Notes: generated from the sequence alone by a model not told the origin. A stretch of DNA of 64,000 nucleotides from Pavona decussata (GCA_977016875.1 CDRNST010000218.1:1178001-1242000), one strand, 5' to 3'. Counted from the first letter of the stretch, positions 2,005-32,499 are shown. Program-made: numbers and translations.

Positions 2005-5000
2005 TTACATCTTTTTTCCTCCACGAAATTTGCGGCTATTCTGAGGCCTCCAACATGACCTAGCAATATGGCCCCGGCGGCCACAATTAAAGCACACTAC
2101 CAGGCTTGGCTGACGAGTGGCACTGGAACCTGGGGGAGCTGAGGGGACTCTAAGCCTTGTAACTGGAGACTGCTTAACAGCCTTGTGGATCTCTTTCGCG
2201 ATCGCAACCTCTTCTTCAGAGCCAACCATTTTAAGCAGAACAGGCTGAAAAGTTGGAGAACCCATCAATGGTCTTGTCTGGCGCAGGATAATGGAGAAAC
2301 GATTTGCCCGATCATGACCCTTTCTCTAGCAGTGTCGCATAGCTCTTCCGAAGCTGCCCATGTGGCGAATGCATCAAAGATGGAAGGAGGACGAGAGAGA
2401 AGCTGACGCACATGTTTGAGGGTTGTTTCGACAGACTTCTCATTACTTAATTCTTTTAAATTCACCTCAGATTTTAAGTTCTCCAACTAAAAATAGGAAC
2501 GTAAAAAGAGAAAATAAACAACCCATGCACTAACTTGGCAAGGTGAACTATAAAAGAAAAAGCATGCGAAAAACCAAAAACAACGAACCATCATGCACAC
2601 CCAACATTAAACAAAAGGCCGACACACGGCAACACCAGAAGTGTTTGACACGCGAGCGAACGTTTAACACACGCCCAAACCAAAACTATGCCTGATACAC
2701 GAAGAAAGGATAACTAAAACACGAAGCAAGACGACGAATTTTACATGAGACCCAAATGAACAATAAACAAAACTTGACACACCGCACAATAAGCGAACGT
2801 ATAGCCAGAATACGGAAACGATATACAATAAGAGCCAGACGCACCAAAGGACATAAAGCCATTTACCAACACACAGCATAACATTAAGGCTAGATAATGA
2901 GACGTGTTAAAGTGGACACAGAAAACATAATATGAGATAAGCCCATGAGCTGACATTTTGATAAAACCAAACACACGGGAAAACGCTAAGCTGAAAAGCG
3001 TACCAAAAACGTAAAAGGCGTACCAAAACAAACAGCAAACAAATCGTGATAAACAGAAAAGCGAAAGTCCGGTGCTTAAGCAGCCGACAAACTAAGGTTA
3101 ACACACCGTACATAAATTGAGCTTGACATACCGGCGATTGACTCATCTAAAGTCGATTAACGGCTTACGATAAGAGCTAGACACGAGCGTTTAGTTCGAA
3201 AAGACACACAGCACACGCTAACTGTGATTGACACACAAAAATAGAAATGACACATGGTACACTCAAACTTACTCGACACACGAGCAGACATAAAAAACTA
3301 AAACCGACACACGGTGCACCAAAACGTTGTAAACACACGAGCAAACGAGCCAGCACCCCCATAGGCACACTTAACAAAGCCCGACACACGAGTGAACATG
3401 AAACTAGAACCGACCCACGGCACACCTAAATAGCGCCCGACACGCGAGCAAATGAAAGGCTTGAACCGACCCACCGGAACATCTTGTACTCGACACACGA
3501 GCAAACGTAAAACTAAAACCTACGCACGGCACACCAAAAATGTTCTAGACACACGAACAAATGATAAATTAAACTAGAAAGCGACACACAGCACATCCAA
3601 ATTGCACTCGACATACGAAACAATAGCTTGAAATTAATTGACACACGGTACATCCAAATTGCACTCGACACACGAGCAAACTACAAACTTGAAACCGACA
3701 CACGGCACATCCAAACTGAACTCGACACACAAACAAACGATAAACTTGAAACCAACACACGGCACACCCAAACTGAACTCGACACACGAGCAAACTACAA
3801 ACTTGAAACCGACACACGGCACATCCAAACTTAACTCGACACACGAGCAAACGATAAACTTAGAACCGACACACGACACATCCAAACTGAACTCGACACA
3901 CGACCAAACTACAAACTTGAAACCGGCATACGGCACATCCAAACTGAACTCCACACACGAGGAAAAAACGATTAGCTTGAAACCGACACACAACACATCC
4001 AAACTTAACTTGACACACGAGCAAACGATAAACTTGAAACCGACACACGGCACACCCAAGTTGTACTCGACACACGAGCAAACGTTTAGCTTGAAAGCGA
4101 CACACGGCACATCCAAATTGTACACGACACACAAGCAAACATTTAGCTTGAAACCGACACATGGCACGCACATCCAAATTGTACTCGACACACGAGCAAA
4201 CGATAAACTTGAAACCGACACACAGCAGATCCAAATTGTACTCGACACACGAGCAAACGAAAAACTTAAAACCGACACACGGCACGCCCAAATTGTACTC
4301 GACACACGAGCAAACGAAAAACTTAAAACCGACACACGGCACGTCCAAATTGTACACGACACACAAGCAAACGTTAAGCTTGCAACCGACACACGGCGCG
4401 CATGTTCAAATTGTACTCGACACACGAGCAAACGATAAACTTGAAACCGACACACGGCAGATCCAAATTGTACTCAACACACGAGCAAACGAAAAACTTA
4501 AAACCGACACACGGCACGTCCAAATTGTACACGACACACAAGCAAACATTTAGCTTGAAACCGACACATGGCGCGCACGTCCAAATTGTACTCGACACAC
4601 GAGCAAACGAAAAACTTAAAACCGACACACGGCACGTCCAAATTGTACACGACACACAAGCAAACGTTTAGCTTGCAACCGACACACGGCGTGCAGGTCC
4701 AAATTGTACTCGACACAAGAGCAAACGATAAACTTGAAACCGACACACGGCAGATCCAAATTGTACTCGACACACGAACAAATGTTTAGCTTGAAACCGA
4801 CACACGGCACATCCAAATTGTACTCGACACACGAGTAAACGAAAAACTTGAAACCGACACACTGCACGTCCAAATTGTACACGACACACAAGCAAACGTT
4901 TAGCTTGCAACCGACACACGGCGCACACGTCCAAATTGTACTCGACACAAGAGCAAACGATAAACTTGAAACCGACACACGGCAGATCCAAATTGTACTT

Positions 5001-5719
5001 GAGACACGAACAAATGTTTAGCTTGAAACCGACACACGGCACATCCAAATTGTACTCGACACACGAGCAAACGAAAAACTTGAGACCGACACATGGCACA
5101 TCCAAATTGCACTCGACACACAAGCAAACTTTTAGCTTGAAACCAACACACGGCACAACCAAATTGTACTCGACACACAAGGAAACGTTTAGCTTGAAAC
5201 CGACACACGGCACACCCAAATAGCGCTCGACACACAAGCAAACGTATAGCTTGAAACTGACACACGGCACACCCAAATAGCGCTAGACACACCTATGTAC
5301 AATGGCTCACACACAAAAAAGCAAAAAAAAAAAAAAAAGAGGTGCTAACGAGAAGGCAATTATAACCAAAATAGCGCAACACTTGAAGGAACACAAAGAA
5401 AACCCTGGGGGATAAAAGAGAAAAAACGAAGCGACGACAAAACCATGCAAAAATAAAACTAGGGCGAAAAGCAAATACACTGAAAACTAAAAAATACCTC
5501 GTTCAACTGATCTGGTTGTCCAGCCACCGCTCCCGCTGGATGCGCATTAGGAGCCGGTGGAGCAGGTAAAGCTTGGTCCGCGACAGCAGGAACTGGAGAA
5601 GCCGGTGGAACCGGAGTGGCTAGTGGGGCCGGAGCGACCGGTGGAATCGGGGCGGGCGGCGGAACGATATTTGCCAAAGCCTGCAAATCAGCGCCCGCCG
5701 GATCTAAAGGCACAGCCAT
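2005..5719 (-). pseudogene. Spliced gag-like gene (exon 1 5719-5498; exon 2 2486-2005 with one frameshift), C-terminal CCHC zinc knuckle
   Basis: A phase-0 donor GAG|GTATTT at 5497 and a phase-0 acceptor with a long pyrimidine tract (...ttcctatttttag|TTG) at 2487 join QPDQLNE to LENLKSEV. A 1-nt loss near 2320 separates ORFs 2265-2486 and 2005-2268. Confidence 0.7.
3180..5292. repeat. ~57-bp tandem minisatellite (two ~27-30 bp subunits, each with CGACACACG) inside the gag intron
   Basis: Repeated unit gacacacgagcaaacgataaacttgaaaccgacacacggcacatccaaattgtactc, with occasional 61-bp variants. It degrades toward about 2600. Confidence 0.9.
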
Positions 5720-5997: not shown

Positions 5998-7785
5998 TGA
6001 AAATAGCTCCTCTACCTTTTTGCTCATATAATTCACGTAACACTTTCTTTAGACTTTCATACTCAGCTAATATATGCTGATTCAAGTTGACATCTTTACA
6101 AATCTTCGCATCTAGTTCTTCTAATTTACTCTGAGTAGCGCTTTCACGTGTTTTTGAAAGCGTATTCTTTCTTTTAGAATAGCGAATCGTTTCTGACCTT
6201 ATTTCCATTTTGATTAATTCCCAGAGCAGTTGTTAATTATCAACCTCAGCATATTTCTGCAGAATACATAGTCTTTAATTATTTTTAAATATAACTTGTC
6301 TTGGAGAAGCATATTATTAAATTTCGAAGTACCCGGGCCGCGTTTAAATTCGTCATTGAGATTCATGCTTAAAAATATTGTCCTATGGCCAGGTGCGATC
6401 GAAGCCCATACTTCTACTTTTATGATATCAGGTTGAAATTTACCACTTTCTAGGAAAAAATCTAATCAAGATTTAAGCTTTAGGGTTTTTGACTCATATG
6501 CGTAAGATCTATTTTTTGGATGTAATATGTGATAGATATCTATAAGATTGGCTACTTTCATAAACTACACCAGAGAATTCCTATACCTTAATTCTTTCCA
6601 AAGCAAGCCGCCCTGTTTGTCCACAGCGTTTAACGTCATATTCCAATCGCCAGCGATGATCAGATTAGATGTTTCAATTAAAGATATAACGTTCTTACTA
6701 AGAAGATCGAGAAAGTCAATTTGCTCACGTTTATCTGTGGGGGCATAAACATTTATGACATATAAAGTGTTCTCGCCTGTTTTTAAGTGTAATACTATGA
6801 ATCTTCCATTTGAGTCAAGTTCCACTGCCTCTCCAGACAATAGGCAATTTGGCTTAATTAGAACACACCCCCTTTGGAATGTTCAGAACCATGGGAAAAA
6901 AAGATCTGACCACCCCATTCCGCCAACCAGATCTTCTCGTCTTTGTGATTTGAAAAAGTTTCTTGCAAGAGATACACACTAGCCTTTTTGTTCTTTAGAT
7001 GTGAATATTGATCGCCTTTTCTCCCTATTTCTTAGACCTCTGACATTGAGCGACAAAAACTTCAAAACAGCCATTTATACAAATCATATAATCACTGACA
7101 ACTTGAGACAAAAGCTCAACAAAACAAAACAGAATGTTTTCCTATTAAAACAAAAGTACAATAGCCCACAGTTACTTACCTCTTCTGGAAAAATGAAACA
7201 ATGAACCGTAACAACCCAAGCGCAAATAAGCGAGGTTAGCTTTTTTGAAATATTTCATTACATCGTATGCAAATTTAAAATTGTTGACCTTTTTATCAAT
7301 AATCTGGAATTAGAGTTCGTTTAAATCTTCAAAACAGTTGATTCTTCATACTTTGGCGTTGATATCCGTCTTTAAGGAGATTTTTCCGTGGATAGTCCAT
7401 GCTCTGCCATTCAGATACTTTTTCTTTACTTTCCTTGATTCTCTGAAAAGGTGTGCTCTCCAGGATGTTAAATTTTCGTTAATAGAGATCCTCTCCACAT
7501 TTAGTTCTCTTAAGTTGAGCTTCTTTAGATTTAGCCTTGCGTTAAATAGTTCACTTTTAAACCTGTAGCTGCTGAAACATACTATAATTGGTTGAGGTGC
7601 ACCATTGGTTTTCCTCCTTAATCTGTGTACGATATCGACAGCATTGCACGAAATGTTAACACCCGATAGGTGTCCTAGTCTTACGATATTTTCGATATTA
7701 TCTTCCTCTTCTCGTTCAGGGATTCCATGAATCTCGAGATTAAATTTACGAGTGTATTGTTCAAGATCATCATGTTTAACCTCTA
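5998..7785 (-). mobile_element. L1/Tx1-clade LINE fragment (ORF1 C-terminal half + ORF2 APE endonuclease), degenerate
   Basis: ORF1: LEQYTRKFNLEIHGIPE...IVHRL...INENLT. ORF2: KFLSLNVRGLRN, INVYAPT, AGDWN, LWELIKMEIRSETIRYSK...GAIF. Many stops and frameshifts. Confidence 0.85.
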
Positions 7786-8045
7786 GTTTACCATACGGAA
7801 TGTTTGCATGGATAGGTCATTAGCCGTGTATTTTTGTTCACGACAATGACAATTTGCAGCTAAAATGCTAAAAGAAAACCTGAAAATACTTTCATTCTTT
7901 GCAAAGAAACTACCCAAAGGACTGATTCCAACATGGACGAAGAAGACTATCATTTCCAAAGCAAATTTTACTATCTTGAAGATCTAGAAACCTCTGAAGC
8001 AGGCATCAGCAAAAGCCAGGAAGTCATTGACGATTTCATAAACAA

Positions 8046-9238
8046 CATTACAACTTCACGCCAATTTAAGTGTGTCATTCAGAAATGGGAAAAAACGCTG
8101 GATTTTGTAGCTTGAAGGCTCGTTTTTAGTCCTTTAGGTATTCACTTTGAGAGCCACCGAAAACGTGTTGAATAAATTCGGTTTCATTCGTTTGGAAAAA
8201 AGTGAGATCTTTTGGATAAGGACCTAAAGCGACTTCAAAGGAATGGAACAATAGCGCAATTATGCGACCACGAGCGGCAGAGTTTATTATTGTATCCTTT
8301 TGTTCTTGATGTGTGAATAAACTGCATAGAATGACTTCGGACTTTACATGCATTTAGTTTTTTTTGCAAAACATTTCCAAGTTCGATATGTATTTATGAA
8401 AATAGAGCATTTTGAGAGCTTCAAAAAGAGAGCTTGCATGAGGCTTTTTGGTCAATGTAGGCCGAAGTTCGATGTTTGTTTGTTCATCGGCCGTTCGAAC
8501 TGGAAAGTTAACTTATGCAAAGCCGTCTTCTTCCGACGCATGTGTGAATTCCCGAAGGTATTATTGCAGAGAGTCCTGAATAAAATTTAAGTTCATCCCG
8601 AAAAGTTGCTTTTTTATTTGTATTTTTTTAACGAAAAGGTCGATTTGACGGCTGTAAAATGTGGTCTGAATGAGTTTCTGTGGTCGAGATTTCTCAAGAT
8701 TTCTGACAGTTCCGCAGCGGACTCCTCCTTCTCGGTTAGATTTTGAATTATTGAAGTTATTCCCTACAGAGTAAAAAAGTTGTTTGATGAATTTCACTTT
8801 CTTCTTTAAATAAATCAAATAAGGCCTAGATTTTTTATATTACTGCAAACGCTGAGCATTTCTGAGTTCTTGATATTAACAGCCGTGTTTACGTTTGATA
8901 TTCGAGATCGTTCCGATAAGTGCGTGCTTGATCATAAGCATAAAATAAACTTTAAAAGTTTAGAGATTATCAAAGAAAAGTTGCAGTCCGACAGCTTTAA
9001 AGAGTTTTTTTGTGAATCGAACTGAGCTATTGTTCGTTCTCAGATGATAAACAAAAGGAAATTGTCACACATTTCCTCAAAGGGCCTTCCGATTTCTATA
9101 GTTGTCTTACATTCCCGAGTGACATCCGACATGAACACCGATGAATCGGCAATGAGTCTAAACAATAGCATGAATATATGAATACTAAACGACCCACAAA
9201 ACGTGGGTACACACTTAAATCGACGTGAAGTTGTCATG
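8046..9238. mobile_element. Non-autonomous TIR DNA transposon inserted in the Crypton ORF
   Basis: Imperfect ~30-bp TIRs: CATTACAACTTCACGCCAATTTAAGTGTGT versus reverse complement CATGACAACTTCACGTCGATTTAAGTGTGT. The TSD is ambiguous (AA, or AACAA/AACAG). Confidence 0.7.
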
Positions 9239-10079
9239 AACAGAAAAGTGGAAACACAAAAGGAAGACGTCTACTGATATGAACACTTTACTCCGTTTTA
9301 TTGAAGCTAATGACTTGATTAGTCAAACAATTGAAAGCCTACCTGCGTCCGAGCTTGATCACCTTTTTGTATGAACGTACGCAGGAAAAATGGTCAATAC
9401 GAGCCAGCAACATTTTTCAGTTTTCAGCGCAATATATAGCGATGCGTATCTGAGAAGAAATATCCATTCAACATACTCAAGGATAATGAGTTTGAAAAAT
9501 CGAGAAGAGTTCTAGCTGTCAAGCACAAGTCACAAGTTCACAAGCACAACAGAAGAAACAAGCTGCAAGCCGCTCAGGCGATTGACGAAAACAAAGAAGA
9601 TGCTCTTTTTGCGACTCCAATCCAGTTTCAATTTAAAGAACTGTGTGGCGGTGACTGTGGCGTTTTTTATCCCTACACTTGGGTTTCTGAGCCAGAGATA
9701 AGAGCGATAAGGACGATTGACTTAATACTGCTTCTTTTAAAGTTGAATATGATTTTCACAGAAACCTTTTCTTGATCTGTACTTTGTGATGTGCTAGTAA
9801 ATTTTCTGTGATCAACGAAACCCTTTTGTGTTTCAAGAACAAACCGCAGCCGTAAGATTTTCGTCAAATTCTGCTACAAATCGTTCTTGAATTTTTTTCT
9901 ATAATCAACATAATTACATGTAAACGTTCAGTAAATTTGTTTTCAAACTCGTGGTACCATAGCTTGTTCTTTCTGGGTTGCTCGCTTCATCAAACAACCC
10001 CTTACAACGGAAACCTTTTGAATTCAAGTGACCGAAAGTGTATCTTTATAAATAAACAAGTTTGCTCTGAGTGGCATAT

Positions 10080-10238
10080 AATAAACTACTAACTAACCTA
10101 GCTTGCTCGAGCCGTACTCGGGAATATTGGCCCTCAGCCGTTATTGTACGGATGTCGCTGTGCTCGGTCCGTAATGCCACGACCTCTGGCCAATATTCCC
10201 TAGTACAGCCCTCGCGCTCAGTTAGTAAGAGGTTAATA
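10080..10238. repeat. Long imperfect hairpin at the Crypton-like 3' end
   Basis: actaac...cgagccgtac.gggaatattggcc...gtacgga // tccgta...ggccaatattccc.gtacagccctcgcg...gttagta. Confidence 0.7.
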
Positions 10239-10244
10239 ATGTTT

Positions 10245-11140
10245 CTGGTCAGCCAGTGAATACCTACTTTTAACAGTTCTTAAAGGACTTCTGAAGGAGT
10301 ACAGCAGCATCATACAAGGTTTTCTACTCCTTGTACAATCTTCATTAACAGTTTCAGATAACTGAATCGCAACATTCTTTGATGCTTACACGCTCTGTTT
10401 AAGCTTATGGTACTCAACACCTTCTACCTTGGCCTGGACCTTGGACTGCATGTCTTCCCTTTCACGTTGTTTTCCTGCAAGATAGTGTCAAATGCAGCCT
10501 GTAGTTGCGACATATTCATTACCTTGCCACTCTTCAGTGCCATCTCCGTCATGGTTACAAACTCTATCTTAGCTGCTACATCACTTGCTTGCTGGATGTT
10601 TGATGTAGCACAAGGTTTATGAAGCACATTTGTGACATGTTTTGTCCAGGAGCTTTTATGATATTTGATGTCAATTGCATGAGCATCCAACTACAGTCAC
10701 GGCAGCATCCAGAGAACTTCCTTCAGACAATGTACTGACAGTGTGTAGTGGTTGGCGATATCCTCCCTCACCATCAGAGAAAAAACACACACCTCGATTG
10801 TATGGCGATGTCTTTGAACATGTTAGTGGCTGTTTAGCTTCCAGTGACAGATCACAAGATTTCTGTCTTGCCTCGTCTGGATCAGACAGTTTTTCTTTCA
10901 TACCTTTCTTTAGCTCTTTTTATTATGCCTGAATGTGCTGTTTCTTGCTAAGACTTCCTGTGCCATGATACTCGTTCTTCTAGTTCTTCAAATGAAAAGC
11001 CTTTGAAAAAGGACCACAACTTCATGTCTCCATGATGAGATTTTTCCTGAATTGCATCGAATAGTTTCTGGTCTGAAACAGGTTTTTCCAGAAGTTCCTC
11101 ATCTGTTTGTATCTGGCATATGATGTACAATTTAAAGTAA
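10245..11140 (-). pseudogene. N-terminal fragment of a large DNA-transposon protein (Academ-like, tentative)
   Basis: Colinear frameshifted ORFs 10948-11130, 10671-10901 and 10424-10690, with ICQ...SWHRK, VCFF and DAHAIDIKYH motifs. No catalytic domain is in view. Confidence 0.4.
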
Positions 11141-11505
11141 TGCTTGTATTGCGAGGAAACTTCATAGCCACCCTCGCTACATTCTTTGTAAGTCTAGATG
11201 GCAGACCTCTATTCTTATAACTACTGCTGACCGCAAAAAACGAAGGCACAGCCCAGGCCCTCCCTAAAATGTGCACCACAGGAAATCCAAAATTCTGTTT
11301 TCTCTTAATGTTCAAAATATGGTCAGCCACATTTTGTGGTTATAGCATGTTATTTAGTGTATCACTCTGCAAACTTTTTTCCTAGTTTTCGTGTTTGTGT
11401 GATTTTGAGAGCATCAAGGGTATTTTATATTTTTTGGGAGGGGTGGCAATTTCTAAAGTAAGCCCTTTTCAAATATTCCAATTAATTTTAAATTTGTGAC
11501 TTTTG

Positions 11506-12554: not shown

Positions 12555-15500
12555 ATGTCGACTTCCACGAAACAAGGAAGTCAATGTAGGTGTTTGGCAA
12601 GTCCTGAAGCAAATGAGATATTGTCAAAAGGCAACACACATATTCACTGCCCACGTGCACTCTGCAACTGTAAAGCTGATTACCCTATGACTGCATGGAG
12701 GCATCTCCAACGGGTAGAAGCTAAAAGTGAACATTTGGAAAATGAGGCAGCAATCCCGTCAAGCTCTACATTCGAAGTATTTGATACCTGTGAATCAGGC
12801 ACATCAAGCTCCGTGCCTTTAGCAGCGTTTGGAGCGTCAGATTCTTATCATGAATTTCCTTCTAGTTCATCATCAGCTTTGGCCAGAAGCCCTTGTCGAA
12901 GTGATAAGGAAACTTAGCAGACGAAATGACAGTTTGGGATGGAGACAGAGATGTAGAAAGCGACATGCATCTGTCATCAGACAATGCCAGCATGCACAGT
13001 GATGGGTTTTCTGAAAACAACGATTCTGAGAGAGAGAGGAATTGGAGGAAGGAGAAATTATGGAACAATTTGTTTACGACACCAAACTGAGGCTGGTAGA
13101 AATAAAGGGTAAAGCAGGATTTTCCCGGAGCATCTTTGAGGATCTTCTTGTTTGGGGAAAGGACATCACAAGCAAAGACAATGTTCAGTGGAGATCTCTG
13201 TGGCCATCCTGTTGGGCTGATGTACTAGTGCTCCTTGAGAAATTCGGATTCGTGAGTCGAGTCCAAAGTTGTACTGGATCTGCTTAGATAACAGCCACCC
13301 TAATTTGTTTGGTCTTCTCACTACCAAGAAAGAACTCTGTCCTCACTGTGGTCAACAGGGGAAAATTCCACATTATTGTCTCAGCATCACACATAAAGTC
13401 AAAGGATGGTGTTCTTCACCTTCCATGTGTCAAAAGATGACAGCACATTGGAAAGAAAATTCTCACTGGTTGCCTGTAGAAAGACAGGAGGGGTGGGGTT
13501 GGCCACCCAAAAAGGAGTTTTAGGATGGTACTTGTTTTGCTCAACTTGCATACTTTTGGGACTTTAAGGCGGAATGGACTCTACCTGTTAAGTGTCCAGT
13601 AGATGGCTGTTTATTCGTTATTTCTGCTTCATGGTGATTTAAGGCAAGTTGAATGTCCTAATTGCCACAACATCTTTCAAGTTATTCCAAAGAGAGTCAA
13701 AGGCGACTCAAGAAATCTAGCATATGATGGTGAGTGATTTTTTAAATGTTTTCAATTTGTGAGCTGTGACAGGATAAACTTAGGGATAGTTTTGCAAGAC
13801 AGATTGACTGCTTCTGTAATGTTTGTTTACTTCACATTCACTTTACAGTACACTGGGATGGATGGCAGCCATTTTCATCAACATGAAAAAGATGTGGTAA
13901 ATAAAGATGAATAAACATTTGTGAGAATTACAGATATATATGTACCATGTACATGTACCTAGACAATATTGAAAGTGAATGTGACTTGATCTGCATATTT
14001 ATATTTGAACTAATTTTGCAATCTACCGTCAATTAAGTTGCAATAATTACTTTTCCGGGAGGGGGACTGCCATATGAAAGTGATTTGGGTGCTTGTAAAA
14101 AATTTAGCAAGGGTAGAATTCCACTTTCTCTCATTAATGTCTACCTTAATGTCAACCATGATATATCTACATACATTTTCATGTTCATGCATCTACAAAT
14201 ACAGCTGTATGGAAATTAAATCGACACTGAAAACCAGAACTGCACTTTTGAACCATTATAGTCATGGCAAGCACACCCATCACTTTTATGAGAGAGTCCT
14301 CCCCTTGAAAATTTTTCTAGGAGCCTTTGAAGTTGGATTAGCAACTATGTCAAAGGAGGATCGCTGCCACGTTGATGAGGTGTACGTGTTTGGTTTCGTT
14401 CCATCCTACTTGTTACTAAAGAAACATCCAGTGTATTTGGATCCTTTTATGGAACCCTTCATAAATGGTAAATTTTATTTGCGTTGTGAAAGTTTCAGAA
14501 CTCTCTGAAGTTAATGTTCAGTTTCAAAGTTAGTAACTGGGAATTACTGCTATGCGTTTTCATTCTGTGAAGTGGGAAAATTTGTCAAATGTGGCGAGAA
14601 AGGCTGCAGGCGCTGTGATATAACAAGTAATTTTGTTTTCATTTTTTTAGAGCGAACGGAAGTGGAAGCACAATTTATGGATCTTATGTACATTTAGCAT
14701 TTATCTGTAAAGTGCCTTTTCCAATCTGCTGCTTAGGATCGGTTTGAAACTTCAAAGTGTTGGTTTTGGGCCAAGAGGAAAAGTTGGGTTGAAGTTAGCA
14801 CCAGATCACCTGGACGAAAATTGACTGAGTGTGCCATCCCTGCTCCCCAAAAGTTCTAATTGTGCCCCTTATTATGTTTATAATGTAAACAAATTTAGAC
14901 ATATAATAATTTATACACCTTACCATGATTTTTTTATAGGTGAGTATTTTCTAGCTTCTCGTCACTATTATTACACCAATAATAGGTACCATACAAGATT
15001 TCCTCCAGAGTCAAAAGACATCCTAACAAAAATTGCACTTCTAAATGAAATTGAACAGGAGGAGAGGGTCGCTGTCAGAGAGAACATGTCCAAGGAATGT
15101 GGTTACACTGGGCTCTCAATTATGCACCTACTATGGCCACTGTATGGTTTTCGCTATGATAAGGACTTGGTGTTTGATGAAATGCACACTGTGCAACTCA
15201 ATGTTGTAAAAGAAGCCCTCGATCATCAGTTGTTTGATGAAGATAATCCTGTAGATTGGTGTGAGGTTGATAGAAGATTACAGCAATTACCATGGACTGC
15301 AGGTATAAACCTGAACTCAGTGAATGTATCTTTTGGCTAATAGCTTTGGCCTGTTTCTGAAACACTCATGTCAAGAGCTTTTGTATTTATATTTATGTTA
15401 TAATCACACACAGCTACTGGAATGCTGTTGTTCATGTCCTTATCAATTAATTCTCATCATTCTTCAGATAAGCCTCTGAACAGTGTCCAGTAATATAATA

Positions 15501-16933
15501 TAATATTGAAATGTCATCATTCAAAATGATTTCATTTCTCCTTAAAGATATGTACCAAATAAGTCGCACCTAGAATATTGTAATATACTTGAATTGCTTG
15601 GTGGTTAAAATTATATTTTGTTCCTCCATTTAAAAGGTTATTTATTTTCACTCCTTTGTCTTCAACAGAATTCAGAGCATCCAGACTACCTAAAGGTATT
15701 ACAACCCGCCTTGGATACTGGAAAGGTAGGTATCACATGTTTATTTTACTTGCCACATTCATGTTTATGTTGTTCAATTTATTTTTCGCTTAAAATTTTC
15801 CAAACCAGTGTGATGTTTATTTTCTTTTGTCTCATGTTTGTACATGTAAATGATATTACAACCCAGAACAATAAAAAGAAAAAATCAAGTCGACCTCCAA
15901 AAGTTTTTTCATTGTGTTTTGCTATCCTGCTCTTAATAATTAACGGATAATTTTGAAATGTATACAAGTTCACTTAACCATGCTAGTCTTGAAAATGACT
16001 CTGTACTTTTATCTCGAAAATTGTATTAGTGTTTTTGCTGAGATGCAAAGAACATATATAGCGATCATGAGTAACTATTAAACGCTATACTCTAATGAAC
16101 TTTAATCGCCAATTATTATAGAGGGCTACAATAAGAATAGTTTTTTTGTCCCTTGAAGTTTGGTTCAGTATTTTTAAGTAACATCTTATTCTAATCCTCA
16201 TTTTCACTTTTCACTTTTAGTTATGGGCCAGGTCTCTTTCACAAGAAAAACTGTTATATGCCATGAATGCTGATGTTAGAAATCAAGGTCATAAAGGTAT
16301 TCCTGTTGGTGGTCTTCAAAGTTGTGACCTACCTCAAGGTACAAGGCGGAATATAGCAGCCTGCTGTGCAAGTGAAATGTGTGAAGTTGATGAACAAGGA
16401 AACTGTTGTCGCAGTTTTTGGCTACCAGAACATGGCTATAGTGGTTTACTTTATAGAGAGAAAGAGAATGTCATTGTTATAGTCCCTGGTGATGGCGAAA
16501 TTGTTGTTTTGGTTCACACTATATTCACAGTGCCAGTTCTAGGTCAGAGAAGGGCTTTTATTAAAGCAAAAAAGTTTGAGCGGAATGGACATTCAATAAA
16601 CAGTGACAACAGAAAAGTTAAACAAAACTAATCACTATCTATTTGTAGAACTGGAGAATGTGAGCAGGAAGGTTACGTTGCAGGCTTTGACTACTGATCC
16701 TGGAAGCTCTCTTGTTATTGACTTTATGAGAAGACTGTTCCCAATTACAGTAGGAAATGTTGTTTTGCCTTATTATCCTGTTGTGAATGACATGGTCATG
16801 GTTAGAGAAGCAGTTACTGATGATGTATGGAGAGTAAGGGTGGTTGCTTACAATCTTCCTCGAAAATTTGTGTTAGGACGTTGTTTTGAGAAAGAAGATG
16901 AGATCTGGATTCCAGAGCAAGGCACTCACAATC
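12555..16933 (+). pseudogene. Multi-exon EnSpm/CACTA (Transposase_21-like) transposase, 5' part; interrupted by the MULE
   Basis: CPHC zinc finger, DG..F, HWDGWQPF, GFVP, LDPFMEP, GCRRC and DLVFDEMHTVQLNVVK motifs on GT-AG exons, with stops and frameshifts. Confidence 0.75.
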
Positions 16934-22923: not shown

Positions 22924-23867
22924 TACAAAATTGAGTTAGCAATCTTAGCGTATTAGCTAGCTAGCCATATGGCTTATCAATATTTGTGGGTTCTATTTTT
23001 TGGATAGTATCTACTGAAGTGAAGAACTTATTACAAAAATATACAGACACTGTATTCAAAAATATTAATTAACAACATTGTTTACATTGTTATTGAAAAA
23101 CTGTTGTGTTGGCAGGCAAGTGAAACACTTAACTGGATGGATAGGTTTCCTCACTGCCTGTGGTGGGTGTTCATGACAACAAATCCTAGTTTTAATTAAG
23201 GTTAACTGAAATTGCAAAAAACCTATTATTCAAGGATCTGCTTGAGTTCATTGTTAACTTTTCCAGCAGCAACACTTTGCCTGACTAGCTGCATCACATT
23301 GCATGTGTAAATTGTGCAACCATCGTCATGTACATTTGACTTGGAAAGACCACAATGACAAAATCTGTTATCATGGGCCTTCACCCTCTTGGGGATGTAG
23401 GAGTCACAAGCATTATTTTTTTCTCTTGTCGGTAAGAAACACTGGAGTTGTTCCGCACAAAAACGTTGTGTATGCAAATATCAAACTACTTACGTTGGAC
23501 ATGCAAATAACAATAACAGACGTGAAATGCATATGGGGCGCCGATTGGGACATTATTGTATATTTTAAAAATATATCCTAAACTTACAATTTATGCTAAA
23601 CTTTCGGCGTTATGGAGTGTTCTCAGTATGAACTTTATGCAGAACTCAAGAATTATGGCCAACTTTACTTGTACGGATGTGTGGTAATGTTTTAGTTTGT
23701 CCTAAACTTTTCTTTTGTGGAGCGTTTCAATTTGAATTTATGCCAAACTCGAAATTTATGGTCAACTGAAAATTTATGCTCAACTCAATATTTATGGCAT
23801 GATGCATTGCACGCAAACAACCTGAACGGGAGGGACTGGTGCGGGTGGCCGCCATCTTCAATACAAT

Positions 23868-25388
23868 ATGGCAGCGAGAGTAACACGAAGACCTAACAGT
23901 CTTGCTTCTTTTTTCACTGCTGCAAGGCAACTTGTGTCTGAAGTGGAATCGTACTTTTCGTCTGATGAAGATGGCAACCTTGACAGACTTGAACTACTGG
24001 AAGGTCGTCTGGAAGAGGCCTGTGAGACCCTTTATGTTGTCATTCAGCAATCTGGGGACTTGAGCTCTCAAAACCCAAACAACGCGGAACTGGGTCAGTT
24101 TAACGCTGACATGAATGTTCTTTGCCGTCACTTAAATGTACTTAGAAGCCACTTTGGGGCTCAGGCAGCTGAAGAGGGAGGACGGGATAAAGAACTGTAC
24201 TCGTGCCCTACAGAGAACTCTGGAAATACAGGGAGACCAAGGTACTTAATTTCTGTTCAGCAGCTTCAGTTCCTCAGAGATTTACATTTTTCGTGGACAA
24301 AAATAGGCAAAATTCTTGGGGTGTCAAGAAAAACAATAAATCGAAGGAGACAGGAGCTAGGAATGAGTGAAGAACTTTCCTGGTCTTGCGTATCTGACGA
24401 TGACCTTAAACAAATAATGTGTGAGATACAAACATTAACCCCAGGAATTGGCCAAACAAGGATGCTGGGATCTTTAAGGAGCAGGGGGCTGAAGATTCAA
24501 AGGTGGAGCTTAAGACAATGCTTGCGGGAAATTGACCCTGTTGGCACTGTTCTGAGATGGCGGCAGGTAATTCAGAGACGGAGTTACCACGTAAGATCTC
24601 CAAATTCCCAATGGCATCTTGACAGCAATCAAAAGATGGTAAAATGGAGATTTGTCATCCATGCTGCTATTGACGGGTTTTCAAGAGTTATTTTGTATGT
24701 ATACTGTGCCACAGACAATACGTCAAGGACAGTGCAAAGTTTGTTTGAAGAGGCAGTTAGACAGTATGGTCTACCCTCCAGAGTTAGATGTGACCATGGG
24801 CTAGGAAACGTGGGTGTGGCAACTACAATGCTTCAGATGAGAGGTCTTAATAGAGGAAGTGTCATCACAGGCAGCTCAGTGCGTAATCAGAGAGTTGAAC
24901 GGTTACATCGAGATGTAACCAGTGGAGTCTTGCGTGGGTATATTGAGCAGTTTGAAGAGCTGGAAAGATATGGACTTTTAGACAGTAGCAATGATGTCCA
25001 TTTGTTTGCTCTCCATTTTGTTTACAAAGAAAGAATCAACAGGTCTCTCCAAGAGTTTATTGCTCACTGGAACCATCACAGCCTTAGCACCGGAAAAAAC
25101 CTTTCCCCTCTTCAGCTTTGGAGCCAGGGTGTTCTTCAACAGTCCTTATCCTGCAGTCCAGCAGTACATGGCATCCTGACAGATGACAATACCATTAACG
25201 TTGATGACATGTTGTCATCTGCAGAGAATGATGAAGCTACTGTGGTTGTTCCAAAAACGTTGCTGGGCCTTTCAGATGAAGACATTGATATTTTGCAAGC
25301 TACACTTTCCGGATATGGGGATGACAGTATCAGTGGTTATTTACAAACTGTGAACACTATTTGCCAGCTTCTTAATGTCAACTGCTGA
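23868..25388 (+). CDS. IS3EU integrase-like DDE transposase (506 aa, open frame)
   Basis: GRPR plus HTH ([17 protein letters not shown]), [40 protein letters not shown] and SP.QLW. Confidence 0.9.
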
Positions 25389-25902
25389 TGAAAGCAACTA
25401 AATGAATACTGTACAGTCGTAATTCTGCATGCTTTGGTGAAAAAATGTAGGTGAAACAGTGGGTCATTATGCCTCAGAATGTATGCAGCTTGTATGTAGC
25501 CTGCGAACAAGCCCCTTAGTGGGAAATAGAATGAGTTGAACAGTGAGAAAGGGGAGGCAATACTAAATGAACAATTTTTGACTAATGGATAGACCAAGTC
25601 ATTTATTAATCATTGGTCACTTATGGCTTCACTGATCAGCTATCCACTCCACCCTGTGACTGCAAACCTCACCGCTTACACCCTATTGAGAATATTTTAC
25701 ACACTTACTTTTGGCTTATGCTGTGGTTGATAAATTTTCCCGTTGTTGTGTTGTGATGATTGTTATTCTTTCCGGCACTCATTCAAACAGAATGGTCAGT
25801 TATTTTGTGTCATCTTTTGTGTACATAATTCAGTTCATGTTTGGTTTTGTTAGGAAATAAACATAAACAAAACACATTGGATAAATTTGAGGACTGCGTA
25901 TA

Positions 25903-25999
25903 CCGTATTTACTCGAATAAGCGCCGCGGCGCTTATTTAATTTTTCGTGTCTCTTGTGCGGCGCTTATTCGAGGGCGGCGCTTATTCAAGTACATACGG
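25903..25999. mobile_element. Tc1/mariner/pogo-type MITE
   Basis: TA|CCGTATTTACTCGAATAAGCGCC...GGCGCTTATTCAAGTACATACGG|TA. Confidence 0.8.
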
Positions 26000-27246
26000 T
26001 ACTTGCCATAATTATTTTCTTTCCATTTTTGTATTTAGAGAGACATTTTTCATGGCAGCAACCACTCTGGAATAAACGATAATAAAATATTGCCTGAAGG
26101 TTGCAAGAAATTCTAATTACATGGGCAGTATTGTAGAAGATATGTATTTAACATGTACCCAATGGGTTATCAATGGGTAAACACCTAATGATTAATCAAC
26201 TCATTGATTGCTTACATGTTATGTCTGATTAGAATTTAAAATCTTCCAATGTTTTGGGCTTCATATATGACAAACAATTTTCAATGGTTTTTCTTGACCA
26301 TTTGCCAAACCATGTGCAAATTTACCATGAAACAAACCATGAAGGGATCAAAAGGTGTCTACCCAACCCCACAATGTCAAATTAAGGATCGCATTGGCAA
26401 AGAAGCGAATCGCATTTTAGTTAACAGTCATTGGCTGTTAACTTTGACTTCAGCCTCATTATTGAGCATAAACTGAGCTCAAAATAAAGAGAAAGGGATA
26501 CCTGTCTGTCTCTTCAACTTACATGAAAACATGTAAACACTGCCAATGAAATCAAATCCAGTTTAATTACAAAACACAAACCATGCAAAACCACAAACGC
26601 ATCACAAAACATTCATCGACAGCATGCTTTACATACTATTTGAAAATCTGAACATCTTGAATTCTCACCGCATATTTACAAGAAGACCAATATGCACAAG
26701 ACTCACAGAATAGTGTGCTGTCTCATAAGCAACAACATGCAAATCAAAATTCAGTGAACCTACAGAGTCAAACAGCTGATTGTTCTTAAATCTTAGGCAT
26801 GACAGGCCAAATTCAAATCATTCCAAATGATCATCTACCACTGACAGAAATTTAAAATCAGAGACCCACTGAGTAAATTTTGTCACAGACTTCACACATA
26901 AAATAACTGAAACATTTATTTTATTGTAAATTACAGTGCTACCCACTTGAAATTACAATTTGTAATAAAGAATATGATATCCACTATTAAATCTGTATGT
27001 GCAAATTTTTTATATGACTGTAAACCTGACAATCAGAGGTAACAAACTTAGATAACATGAACAGTAAAGCTTTCAAACAAATTTTAAGACTCAAAAGGTA
27101 TAAATTTTCTCCCTGTGACCACAGTGGAAATGGTCATTTTGTGTCACAAAATGCACCAGGCTTAATCATTTCAGTGTAAGCAGAAAGTTCACAAAAACCT
27201 CTCATACTTGAACAAGAGTAGCATTTGAAAAAGTTGCTAGTATGTT

Positions 27247-30189
27247 TTACATACAATTAAATGACTTTCCACATGTTTTCAAAACTGCCTCAACAGACAA
27301 CTTAAAATGATCTCCATTGACAAACGTTTTTGGCAGTGTAATCTCACACAGACAAGTGGAAGCAAAGATAGATGGTTGCTCAGAAAATTTCACTGATATT
27401 GTCTGCAGACCAAAATATGGGAGGGAAGGAGCACCGGTTACAAAGGTCAGAAACATCTTTAAAGTATCCTGAGAAGAGGCCAATAGAAACTGTCAGAATA
27501 CCATTCACTCTTTTCTCTTCATCATCCCTAGAGGTAGGGAACTTGAGACGGCTAACGACTGCTTCACTTGTAAGAGATGATCCGTTGAAGACAAAAAGTT
27601 CTTCAAAGAGCGCAGGATATTTATTCATTTTCTCTAGAAAGCCCAAACATGACAAACCATCTCTAAGCTGGTCAAGTGCAGTCTTCATTCCTCCAATTGC
27701 GTCATGGAAAAGTATGGCTTGTATTACAGAGGTCTTGTTCTCATTCTACAGAGACAGAGAAAAGGGAACAACAACAAATGCCATAAATAAAACTTAAACA
27801 CATACAAGTTCTCAGTTTTCAACCTCAACAAAGTACCAAGTATAATGCTACAATGCAGTGTTCAGAACTGTATTAGTTACAGCATTCTCATCTTGGAAAC
27901 ATTAATATTATGGCAACAGAATAATTTTACAATTTATTAGAATATAACATACACGGTAACATAACAGTCTATACTACACATCACTGACACAAATGCGTGT
28001 ATGGTAAAACATTAGAAGAAGCTCTTGTAAGCAACCACCTAAAATGCCAGAAAAGTGGTCACCTAGAAGAAGGATCGCTTAAGATAGGTCATAGATATGG
28101 TGATTTGACTGAAAGAAGGCAATTTTGTATCACAGACAAGTGGTCGCTTTACAAGACGTGGTCAGAAAGGGAGGTTCAACTGCAAGTTTAAAACTTTCTG
28201 CCAACCTTTAAGACCATTGTAAGTCCACACTCAGACATAACATTTGTAACAGCTTCCTCCATGGAGATTTCATCAGCATTCTGAGCATTCTGGATCTAAA
28301 CAGACACCAAAGTCCTTAGAAAAGTTCAGAACACTTACGGTTGTAAATGTATCTCAAACAGTCAATGGAAATAGCACTGTGTGAGTTTGCAAAAGTATCA
28401 TTTATAGTATTGGGAGTGAAAAAGAGTGAAAAAGGGTAAACCAGCCTATGGCAGGTCTATTTTGGGGATATGGGGCCTAGGTTGAGAGCAGTTGAGGGTG
28501 CGGCTATGACTCTTCACTCTTCACCCACACCCCTAACTCCCCAGCCCCACAAGCCCCCTCCAAGAAAAGGTCTACCCCTCTTTCCAAATACATAATGATG
28601 GCTTGCTGCTGCAGTACTGCTATGTATTAGCCAAATTACATTTCTGGGCTGTTGGTTTTCATTGGTGTAGAAAATTTGGACTATGCAGTGCTATTCAGTA
28701 AAAGATAAGGGGAATAACTCAAATATTTTCCCTTAACATATGCATAAAAGCTTGTGGGATAAACACACACACACAAACACACCTACCTTAAGCACAACAT
28801 CCTTATAGTTGGGATTTGCACAGTCGTCAAAGCACAATTGCTGTATGGCTGCATCCACGCTCCCTGTCGCAAGGTACCAATATAATGCTGAAGAAAAGAA
28901 TGGGAATCCAGGGCCCCCATACAGCACACTATGAACAATGATTGTGCCAATAATCTTCATTAGCCCTGAAATTAAAATATCAGTGTTGTAGAGAGGAACC
29001 TTTCTGCTCTCTCCTAAAAAATAAGTCACAGATAGCCTATGCAGGAGATCTGAAAAGAAATGACGAGAAACACCACCGGTATCAGAGGCTGGTTGGCCAC
29101 TGTAAACAACTCGCACGCCAGCTTTAGGGTCGAAGTCTGGCCTCTTGTAAAATGCCACAGCATCAGCTACAAGATCTTCTTCATCAACTCGCAGCTTTTT
29201 CCGGTCGAAAGCATCATTCAACTTCCCCTTTAACTTTTCTATCAATAGCTCCAGGCTCATGAGTGGGATCTGTGATTCGAGCTCAGGACTACTACTCCTG
29301 TCTGCAAGGAAGGACGCAGCTTCTTGCAGAGAGTTACTGCAGTCATAAGCAAGTTTCAATTCTTCCTCTTTCGTTTCAGGGAACATCTCCTTTAGTACAA
29401 GGAAGCTTCTCTCTTGATCCATCGCAGAAGCACCAGAAAAAGTGGATGGAAGCCCATCACTATCAGCAACTGTTTGGGGTTCTGTGGTCAGTGGTCGCTC
29501 AGGTGTTTTGACATCCCCCAGATCATCCTCCAATGTGTCCCAGGGGCACCTGTCTAAATCTGAGTCTCCATCAACTTCCTCAGAGTTCTTGTGCAGAACT
29601 TTGTCAGGTCTAAGATAAATACTTCCTTGCCCTGAAATGCTTAGAACTCGTGCTGCATTCATTGTAATCCCATCTGCAACTTTTGGGGGAACAATTTCAC
29701 CATAGCATGCTTCGGCAAATTTGAAATTGGCACACTTAGAAACCAAAATTGCCATGACCTATCGATTGGAAATTCGTGCACCACGATCCCATCATTTTCC
29801 AGCGTTATTCTCGATCGGTGAGTCGGTGAGTATGTTTTCTTCTTTGCCAAAGCGGGTGCCTTAGAACGAGTCCCTTGCTTAGACTTGAACTCTGACTTTC
29901 GTCTTCCTGAATTGCCCGACAATGACGGAAAAGCTTCTCGCAATGACTGCCTCACAGCTTCTCCAGAACGACTGATGCTCGAAGCACGTGCACGCAAGGA
30001 CGCTGCTTGTGGACCTAGTGCGGATGTTCCAGCCGTTTGTTGAGAAGGATTTTCCAATGGGTTGGTTAACTGGTTTTCAATGGTATTTCCATGGCCATTT
30101 ACATTTTCTTCTTATCTTTGCAGCTGAGAAGTCGCCTGGCGAGTGATGTCCGCTAAAGCTTGACGAACATTGCCGCCTTGATCCGCCAT
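27247..30189 (-). pseudogene. Three-exon CUE-like + HECT E3 ubiquitin ligase-like gene carried by the IS3EU
   Basis: Exons 30189-28787, 28295-28206 and 27745-27247, all phase-0 GT-AG. CUE-like LKEMFPE...LQEAASFL. HECT N-lobe VRVVYSGQPASDTGGVSRHFF and IVHSVLYGGPGFPFF. C-lobe FLTFVTG...FASTCLCEITLP. A few stops and frameshifts. Confidence 0.82.
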
Positions 30190-30636
30190 TTTGTATCAAA
30201 GAAGGCGAGTCCAAGATGGCGGCCACCCGCACCAGTCCCTCCCGTTCAGGTTGTTTACGCGCGATGCATCATGCCATAAATATTGAGTTGAGCATAAATT
30301 TTCAGTTGACCATAAATTTCGAGTTTGGCCTAAATTCAAATTGAAACGCTCCTCAAAAGAAAAGTTTAGGACAAACTAAAACATTACCACACATCCGTAC
30401 AAGTAAAGTTGGCCATAATTCTTGAGTTCTGCATAAAGTTCATACTGAGAACACTCCATAACGCCGAAAGTTTAGCATAAATTGTAAGTTTAGGATATAT
30501 TTTTAAAATATACAATAATGTCCCAATCGGCGCCCCATAAATGCACGCAACGCCTCATAATAGCTATTGATTAAACAACTGCTTTCGTGGTTGTTATTTT
30601 GATTTAATTATCAGAGCTGTTTGTTTTTGCAACCTC

Positions 30637-31200
30637 CTAAAGTGATCCCTGAAACAAAGTAATTCTGCACTCTGTTAAAAAGGTACAAACTTCTATTACA
30701 CTTTGCAGCAACCACCTCGGGTGACGCGAGATCGATGATGTACATTTGAAATCTTTTAGTTGTTTGAAAATGTGTTCAACTCTAACGCGCTTTCTCGCAA
30801 GCTCTCTGTTGAACTTTCTTGCCCTACGTCTTTCTCTGTTGTTCCGCATTGCGCGTATTTGTGCTTGACGAAACGGTGTTAGCAAAGGAACATTATCAGG
30901 ATACCCTTTATCAGCTAGGAGCACTACTTCGTTCGGCAAATCTAGCACCTGCCCTGGACCAACAGGTTCCATTAAGTGGAATGTTTGGGAGTCATGCATG
31001 CCTCCAAGAAAGCCTGTCTGTAAAAATCGAATGTGACCTGTGTTGTCACAGATTAGTTGAGTGTTTAATAAATGAAAGTGACTGTGTCCACTATAAAATT
31101 CTCTCTGTGGCTCTGTTGAGGGAATCTGAATTTCATGTGGCGTAACGTCGATGCTTCCTACTGCATCTGGAAATTCTGGCCAATTGTTGCGAAGCGCGTC
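30637..31200 (-). pseudogene. Harbinger (DDE_Tnp_4) transposase C-terminal fragment
   Basis: GMHDS, LLADKGY, LLTP and FNRELARKRVRVEHIFKQLK. Confidence 0.88.
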
Positions 31201-32499
31201 CCATTCTCTCGTGCATTTCTGTTATTGTTATTTGCATGTCCAACATAAGTAGTTTGATATTTGCATACGCAACGCTCTTGTGCAGAACAACTCTACTGAA
31301 AGGATCCATCTCTCTAAGCCACAAGAGACAAACAAATTCATGGCGGAACACAATCCACCACCTCATGCTTTTTTTGACATTGCAAGTGTTTTCAACATAC
31401 TTTGCCTGCTTGACATGCTTGGCCTCTTGACCCTGCATGGAGTTAAGGCCACGTCTAAACCCAAGTTTCTCCAGCAACTGGTCGGTGTGATATGGGATAG
31501 CACATCCCACTGTCCGCACAGTTGGATTCACACCACTTAACAGCAGGCAATTTGCTGTGAAGTACTGCTGGCCCAAGATCTTCAAATGCTCCACTTGCTG
31601 CTTGTTTACATCTACCCTGGAGTAAATGGCAGCAGCATCCCTGATTTTTACACCAGTAAATGCCAATGTGTGCAGTTTCACCACAGACCCACTTGATAGA
31701 TTGTTTATCTTCAGTAGTTCCTGAATAAGGTAAGTGAAGTTCCATGAAAACTTCTTTGATTCCAGTCCAGTGAATCTGTAAGAGAAAGAAATTCCCTTTT
31801 TTCTCTTCTCACTGAACCACCTGTTGGAGCTGTTGCAAAGCCTTCCACACTTTGTAGTTCCCAGCACACAGTTCAGAAATGCTACCAGTGGTGATGTGAT
31901 AGGAAGATCTGACACCACTGTTGCTGTTTTGAGTTTAGCCTGGTCAGTGTACTGCATGGCCACTGTCAGGATGGCTAAAAACCACTGCTGCCAGGCATGG
32001 AGGGGCTCCGTCTTAACCAAATCCACATATTTGCCCAGTTGGGGAACAAATTCTTGCCTAGATTTTTGCTCAGCAATGAACTTGGTGACCTCTGCTCTTT
32101 GTTTCCCCCCAGGATCTTTAAGTTTAGCTTTAACCTTCTCAACTTTCTCTGCAACCTCACTTCTCTTCTTGTAATTCCATGGTTGCCAAGTTTCTATAGG
32201 TCCACCAATTGAGCCACCAATGGTCAATTTGTTAGTCTGGTTCACATTGGCAAAGGGTGAAAAGTAAACAGCACAGTTATTAAGTTCTCCAGACATGGAT
32301 GAAACCCATTTCATGTCACTTGGGATTAGCTGAAATCTAAATTCAACTACCGTCGTTTTCATCTAAGCGTGGACACGTGATAGAAAAACATGTTCTAATT
32401 GGGTGCAAACATGACATGCTTGGTAACAAAACATTTGAAGTTTTACAGCCGGTAAGCAAACTTTCGCGCCAAGGTTTGAAAGTTTACAAATTTGTTAAT

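Follow-up and report, generated by a model that had tools for sequence, protein, structure and literature searches.

A 64,000-nucleotide stretch of the genome of Pavona decussata (GCA_977016875.1 CDRNST010000218.1:1178001-1242000; hereafter the window, always meaning this whole stretch) contains, as a single insertion at positions 23532-30539, a 7,008-bp IS3EU/GingerRoot cut-and-paste DNA transposon with two convergent genes, one for its transposase and one for a HECT-type ubiquitin ligase. Our overall reading, which we hold with considerable confidence, is that the second gene, whose product joins a ubiquitin-like (UBL) domain, a CUE domain and a HECT domain, belongs integrally to this lineage of elements and has lost its reading frame in the window copy. 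In intact elements both genes would be transcribed inward from the ends, and their products would act as transposase and ligase.

The window element and its transposase

The element is bounded by terminal inverted repeats (TIRs) of 327 bp that differ at exactly five positions, and these in turn are flanked by perfect copies of a 6-bp target-site duplication (TSD; Table 1). Its termini read TATGG..CCATA, and a TATGG end is common to all families that we examined. According to papers by Kojima (PMC10045372, PMC12730594), IS3EU/GingerRoot elements are marked by TA..TA (TAYGG..CCRTA) termini and by 6-bp TSDs; the window element has both, together with TIRs and a DD35E transposase. The transposase frame is open over its 506 codons and matches Pfam rva_4 (PF24764) with an E-value of 2e-73 (246.7 bits against a cut-off of 26). 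Its residues 8-503 align without stops to intact transposases of a related family (family 2), and D252, D309 and E344, which have the DD35E spacing, are invariant across eight related transposases. In these respects we agree with an earlier reading made from the DNA alone (hereafter the sequence-only reading), which had described an IS3EU element with 327-bp TIRs of about five mismatches, a 6-bp TSD, an intact 506-residue transposase and gene starts within about 25 bp of the inner TIR edges; the start codons lie 10 bp (transposase) and 24 bp (ligase) inside those edges.

The left TIR contains 18-bp subterminal repeats (AATTTATGnnnAACT) at 23588, 23735, 23753 and 23771, which are putative binding sites for the transposase. 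When the 602-Mb assembly was searched with the 327-bp TIR, it was found solely at the two ends of the window element, and this search returned neither miniature inverted-repeat transposable elements nor other copies of the window family. Because, in addition, the closest other ligase match in the assembly is only 57% identical, the window family is single-copy, with its ligase decayed and its transposase frame still open.

The ligase gene is linked to the transposase across families

Searching the same assembly with the largest ligase exon and with the transposase gave 70 ligase-exon matches, which we compared in position with the best 85 of 481 transposase candidates. At least 33 of the 70 lie within 10 kb of one of these 85, and all 33 pairs are convergent; each family has one fixed distance between the two genes, about 4.3, 2.7 or 2.5 kb. 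Chance would bring about 0.003 of the matches this close to one of the 85 transposases (85 x 20 kb / 602 Mb). Genome-wide co-occurrence of HECT and IS3EU transposase genes was among the checks that the sequence-only reading had proposed.

Complete elements of three further families have the same architecture. They carry both genes between TIRs of 280-330 bp at 91-100% identity, with TATGG ends and 6-bp TSDs, and each gene begins at or just within a TIR. Among the elements compared, the TSD is 6 bp long in L061, L062, L064 and L065, and five of six positions match in L063. Several families have many copies in which both reading frames are open. In one family, family 4, the HECT is encoded by a single exon and has an AHTC motif, and the start codons lie inside the TIR; further single-exon HECT families are likewise linked to transposases. 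The convergent two-gene layout recurs in this genome in families whose proteins share only 33-58% identity.

Family 4 (L065) also shows a peculiarity at its gene starts. In L065 (614-754 and 6156-6296) its genes start at 737 and 6173, and both open with the same six codons (MTAMHF) inside the TIRs; its HECT is one 434-codon exon. We considered, and rejected, an N-terminus shared by transposase and ligase in each family: local alignments compared with shuffled sequences gave z-scores of 0.0, -0.3, 1.7 and 2.5, that is, no general similarity. Apart from the family-4 MTAMHF, the sole exception is a 48-residue fusion in P0003 and P0004, two close relatives of the window ligase from a Tara Pacific coral metagenome, in which residues 1-48 of the transposase form the start of the ligase protein. 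On the Tara Pacific scaffold L067, at 2041-5648, a TIR and the 5' end of the transposase gene are joined to the ligase gene without the body of the transposase.

Relatives in other animals and co-inheritance of the two genes

When 1.84 billion cluster representatives were searched with a profile of exon-1 products, 2,792 proteins matched at E<=0.001. The named ones belong to the coral Orbicella faveolata, the hydrozoan Clytia hemisphaerica (some of them as transcript-derived models), the scyphozoan Sanderia and the grouper Epinephelus coioides, and relatives of the family-4 type are present in Pocillopora, Stylophora, Montipora, Acropora, Dendronephthya, Hydractinia and Exaiptasia. We inspected eight genomic contexts outside the Pavona assembly. 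A convergent rva_4 gene lies 1.4-3.5 kb from the ligase gene in Orbicella, in the grouper and on the metagenome contigs L073 and L075. The Orbicella and grouper elements enclose both genes within long TIRs that have TATGG or TATGA ends: in Orbicella (L071) the TIRs are 420 bp long with TATGG ends and the TSD matches at five of six positions, and in Epinephelus (L069) the TIRs are flanked by a perfect 6-bp TSD, GATATG.

The two genes also share a history. We built paired maximum-likelihood trees from seven transposases and seven ligases (fish, F1, F2, L073, L075, F3 and Orbicella), with each interrupted transposase (fish, L075, family 4) entered as fragments linked by X. Both trees separate (Fish,(F1,F2)) from (L073,L075,F3,Orbicella), with support of 100/99 and 94/95. 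This match between the trees argues for co-inheritance, as opposed to repeated capture of the ligase gene. For most pairs the ligase is the less conserved partner, at 16-38% identity against 33-51% for the transposases of the same pairs, indicating that the ligase evolves faster; the exception is the pair of family 1 and family 2 (58% for the ligase, 47% for the transposase). Taken with the convergent linkage in Pavona and the complete Orbicella and grouper elements, the trees make it well supported that the CUE and HECT gene is an integral part of the element lineage and has been inherited with it, as the sequence-only reading had proposed in preference to chance cargo.

Several of these relatives have features of their own. 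The grouper gene model KAL7375259.1 stops short of a last exon at about 17,250-17,520 of L069 (CM120198.1), where an open frame of 91 codons encodes the HECT C-lobe with an ANTC motif and a Phe at position -4. In Orbicella L071, the 5' part of the ligase gene is tandemly duplicated within one TIR pair (7284-8228 and 10256-11200; LOC110050836 and LOC110050834). On L072 (ENA contig ctg4178), a single-exon UBL-CUE-HECT gene, P0102, forms a tandem array with units of about 5.9 kb (9001-10785 and 14926-16710); P0102 has the best Pfam HECT score of the family, and no transposase lies near the L072 array, which may have been amplified in another way or may represent domestication.

Domain composition, predicted fold and catalytic residues

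For the domain searches the exons of the window ligase were used singly and unjoined, and full-length work was done with the natural proteins P0174 (Orbicella), P0166 (Clytia), P0183 and P0102. The window's own pieces score 23.0 bits for Pfam HECT (27253-27489; threshold 23.9) and 14.1 bits for CUE (threshold 21.1), and the domain calls therefore rest on the relatives. In these, Pfam HECT is matched with E-values of 1.8e-15 and 2.4e-12, over positions 4-301 (P0183) and 26-305 (P0102) of 306. CUE reaches an E-value of about 1e-8, with scores of 21.9 bits in P0004 (89% identical), 28.1 bits in P0015 and about 34 bits in Clytia P0166 and P0119. The family profile matches the solved HECT domains of TOM1, HUWE1 and E6AP over their full length (E-values of 1e-13 to 1e-8) and also matches the CUE domain of Tollip. 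The HECT and CUE domains named by the sequence-only reading are accordingly found in the relatives by Pfam, while in the window copy both fall below the cut-off.

An AlphaFold2 model of the Orbicella element protein P0174, made with a 70-row alignment, has a mean predicted local distance difference test score (pLDDT) of 86. Searched with Foldseek, its top 50 matches are all HECT domains (E-values of about 1e-12 over about 390 columns). In a VIA structural comparison, residues 246-602 give Z-scores of 14-19 to Rsp5, UBR5, E6AP, Tom1 and others, and the C-lobe alone gives a Z-score of 12.3 with a root-mean-square deviation (rmsd) of 2.2 A. Residues 192-236 resemble SMARCAD1 CUE1 (Z-score 7.1, rmsd 1.5 A). 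Residues 30-145 match ubiquitin-like domains (TBK1, USP7, Rad23 and Dsk2) at Z-scores of 6-6.8, which are middling and consistent over many rows; we assign the N-terminal domain as ubiquitin-like with moderate confidence. This assignment is taken from the full-length model, the isolated domain predicted from a single sequence reaching a pLDDT of only 54, and an ESM Atlas feature search with the N-terminal domain gave no lead. The bilobal HECT fold is thus seen in relatives (the Orbicella model, P0183 and P0102) and not in the broken window copy.

Upon aligning the C-lobes, we found a Cys at the catalytic position in all nine, as well as in the last exon of the grouper gene, which confirms the conservation that the sequence-only reading had made a test of its proposal. 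HECT ligases need a Phe at position -4 from the C-terminus for the final transfer step; eight of the nine relatives have it (family 4 has Met), as does the grouper exon. The grouper protein has a UIM-like motif where its cnidarian relatives have CUE, which suggests that the capacity to bind ubiquitin has been kept and not any one domain. By these models and alignments, the proteins of intact relatives comprise UBL and CUE domains and a bilobal HECT domain that is complete and has both the catalytic Cys and the -4 Phe.

Decay of the window copy

The ligase gene of the window has three exons, all with canonical GT-AG borders, in agreement with the Porites lobata model P0007 (about 90% identical) and with the convergent three-exon gene of the sequence-only reading. 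The two motifs singled out in that reading are also in place: a CUE-like MFP motif in exon 1, at about 29321-29398, and FASTC at 27366-27352, with the codon for the catalytic-position Cys at 27354-27352. The protein would end in FNCM, with the Phe at -4.

We compared the copy with P0003 and P0004, with P0007 and with intact family 2, using tblastn and a six-frame view, and found four lesions. An in-frame TAA replaces codon 26 (30114-30112), which is Tyr in the relatives. Near 29827-29832 an in-frame deletion of 17 codons (51 nt) has removed a motif conserved in every family, and near 29750, also in exon 1, a deletion of about 40 nt shifts the frame; both deleted segments are conserved in the family alignment. 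A further frameshift lies near 27491 in exon 3, upstream of the catalytic Cys. No GT-AG intron would restore the frame without loss of conserved residues. The window ligase copy is a pseudogene and not a working gene, its reading frame having been lost through one stop, two frameshifts and one in-frame deletion. The dN/dS ratio that the sequence-only reading had suggested as a check is 0.32 over 320 codons between the window copy and L067, with changes at 29 of 217 synonymous and 34 of 743 non-synonymous sites (Fisher p 3e-5).

Alternative explanations

Three other accounts of the ligase gene were weighed. It could be chance cargo, a host HECT gene (for example, a G2E3-like one) that was captured once or trapped between the transposon ends. 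DNA transposons do capture host fragments, and the TET/JBP genes in fungal IS3EU elements are an example of passive transfer (PMC12730594). Against such an origin stand the convergent pairing in families of 33-58% identity, the coral and fish elements with TIRs and TSDs round both genes, the congruent trees, and the lack of both PHD fingers and any homologue with a G2E3 name; we regard it as extremely improbable. A second account takes the window ligase to be intact after all, its lesions being assembly errors or being bypassed by unusual splicing or a downstream start. Small indel errors do occur in long-read assemblies, a 340-codon open reading frame at 29755..28733 has an ATG start, and no stop interrupts the transposase frame. 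Two of the lesions, which removed 51 and about 40 nt, are, however, too large for base-calling error and took away segments conserved in all families, and just as no intron of GT-AG type repairs the frame without deleting conserved residues, so a start at 29755 would still run into the exon-3 frameshift before the catalytic Cys. This makes an intact window gene very unlikely. Somewhat less remote, though still unlikely, is that the HECT domain of the whole lineage is a non-catalytic scaffold, a pseudo-ligase that binds ubiquitin or an E2 and serves as an adaptor or a brake on transposition. The weak Pfam scores mark a divergent HECT, no substrate-binding domain is evident beyond the ubiquitin-related modules, and the HECT domain of human G2E3 has been reported inactive in vitro. 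The catalytic-position Cys kept in 9/9 C-lobes and in the fish, the -4 Phe kept in 8/9 relatives and in the fish, and two lobes that are predicted to fold with high confidence argue instead for a catalytic enzyme.

A co-inherited ligase gene with its frame lost in the window remains our preferred reading, and several observations weigh against it. In Pavona, 37 of the 70 ligase-like matches have no transposase nearby among the best 85 of the 481 candidates; because only these 85 were scored, the unlinked matches are no evidence of absence. Outside Pavona, three of the eight contexts lack a transposase, and the Clytia pair, 4 kb apart, lies on the same strand. The window's exons do not reach the Pfam thresholds for HECT and CUE, and its copy is both a pseudogene and single-copy, so that its own mobility in this genome is not evident. 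Finally, the activity of the ligase, its target and the TIR promoters are all points that we infer.

Comparison with known systems

Among the papers that we searched, none describes a HECT gene in IS3EU and none contains both terms, a search that did not cover Repbase annotation; papers on IS3EU, IS481EU, GingerRoot, Hydractinia and DDE transposases at large mention no HECT, CUE or ubiquitin gene. Animal IS3EU elements as described (PMC6839031) resemble ours in their DDE integrase-like transposase without an HHCC finger, their TA..TA (TAYGG..CCRTA) termini, 6-bp TSDs and long TIRs, and in their occurrence in corals, hydrozoans and fish. They differ in that, in the papers that we searched, the transposase is the only gene described for them. 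Closer in layout are fungal IS3EU families, which carry an alpha-kinase gene opposite the transposase and, in addition, a TET/JBP gene (PMC12730594). They belong to the same superfamily and likewise place a gene for a protein-modifying enzyme opposite the transposase; by contrast, theirs are a kinase and a DNA dioxygenase in fungal hosts and ours is a ubiquitin ligase. Moreover, the fungal TET/JBP gene moves between superfamilies, whereas the ligase gene follows the transposase tree.

In the papers that we searched, the ubiquitin-system enzyme encoded by a transposon is one that takes ubiquitin off, the Helitron VTD deubiquitinase (PMC9741609). Other cases are the OTU and Ulp1 proteases. The deubiquitinases of Helitrons and Helentrons, with VTD and OTU domains (PMC9741609), are, like the ligase, ubiquitin-system enzymes on a DNA transposon that presumably help the element; unlike it, they remove ubiquitin and are fused to the Rep/helicase, whereas here a separate gene encodes a HECT that would add ubiquitin. 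The bilobal fold of cellular HECT ligases (HUWE1, UBR5/EDD, Rsp5/NEDD4) recurs in the element protein, with Z-scores of 14-19 across about 320-345 residues, as do the catalytic Cys and the -4 Phe; upstream, both have a small ubiquitin-binding domain of three helices. The element protein is set apart from them by an identity of only 12-18%, by its short length of about 600-700 residues, by the order UBL, CUE (UIM in fish), HECT, and by having none of the WW, C2, ARM-like or PHD substrate modules of cellular HECTs.

G2E3 is similar in having a divergent C-terminal HECT in a mid-sized protein, and differs in its PHD/zinc-finger region, which the element protein lacks; the distinction is drawn on domain content and names. 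No family member scanned has a PHD or zinc-finger match in Pfam, and among the named homologues none is called 'G2E3-like', all those of the family-4 type being 'uncharacterized' or 'HECT domain-containing'. A link to G2E3 is therefore not supported here, nor is the suggestion of the sequence-only reading that many 'G2E3-like' annotations may be mobile. Two reports illustrate how genes of this name, which may or may not belong to our family, are interpreted when no transposon is considered: one paper records a repeat in Cottus that matches G2E3 by blastx, and another takes the 20 'G2E3' copies of a sea cucumber for an adaptation. For genome annotation our results are a caution: in corals, hydrozoans and fish, genes labelled 'uncharacterized HECT domain' number in the hundreds and may belong to transposons, and reported 'expansions' of such ligases may reflect transposons instead of host adaptations.

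A possible role for the ligase in transposition

In intact elements, the positions of the start codons, which are 10 and 24 bp from the TIR edges in the window element and within the TIRs themselves in family 4, suggest that both genes would be transcribed inward from the TIRs; that the TIR acts as a shared promoter, as the sequence-only reading had it, is consistent with this geometry only. The transposase would bind the 18-bp subterminal repeats and cut and paste the element. The catalytic Cys of the ligase would accept ubiquitin from a host E2 and pass it to a target reached through ubiquitin or ubiquitin-like contacts, most likely either a host factor by which transposition is held in check or the complex formed by the transposase. 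Because the protein has no classical substrate module, the ligase would more likely extend or edit ubiquitin marks, either on the transposase complex or on a host factor at or near the site of transposition; we consider a defined silencing protein less likely as a target, a view that we hold loosely. That the ligase degrades silencing factors or disassembles the transpososome, as the sequence-only reading had suggested, is speculation.

It is possible, and we propose it tentatively, that an animal IS3EU lineage reaching from cnidarians to teleosts depends on its own UBL-CUE/UIM-HECT ligase, which would be the first transposon-encoded ubiquitin 'writer' known and would enable movement by tagging either the transposase complex or a host protein, be it a restriction or a chromatin factor. 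If a HECT ligase is conserved in, and co-evolves with, a selfish element, it would represent another use of host protein turnover, comparable to that of viruses, and it would offer a compact natural UBL-CUE-HECT enzyme for study.

Feature coordinates and neighbouring sequence

Table 1. Features of the IS3EU element, numbered from the first nucleotide of the window
Feature	Position	Strand	Description
Left TSD copy	23526..23531		AATGCA, identical to 30540-30545
Left TIR	23532..23858	+	327 nt, begins TATGGGGCGCC, 5 mismatches to the right arm
IS3EU transposase gene	23868..25388	+	Open frame, 506 codons; helix-turn-helix and DD35E integrase-like core
Intergenic spacer	25389..27246		Between the convergent genes; 76-85% identical to the spacer of the Tara relative L067
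Ligase exon 3	27247..27745	-	End of HECT N-lobe and C-lobe; acceptor AG 27747-27746; stop 27249-27247
Ligase exon 2	28206..28295	-	30 codons of HECT N-lobe; AG..GT borders; corresponds to residues 293-322 of P0007
Ligase exon 1	28787..30189	-	N-terminal helix, basic stretch, ubiquitin-like domain, acidic linker, CUE-like MFP, first half of HECT N-lobe; donor GT at 28786
Right TIR	30213..30539	-	327 nt
Right TSD copy	30540..30545		AATGCA, perfect 6-bp match to the left copy

The spacer between the two genes contains a hairpin with 27-nt arms (25901-25927 and 25975-26001) that are 93% complementary and enclose a 47-nt loop. The IS3EU element is itself nested in the remnant of another transposon. 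To its right, an open reading frame at 30637-30999 (-) matches the PIF/Harbinger-type DDE_Tnp_4 domain with an E-value of 1.3e-10, and an 81-nt inverted repeat (23440-23520 and 31218-31298), 91% complementary, flanks the IS3EU insertion site.

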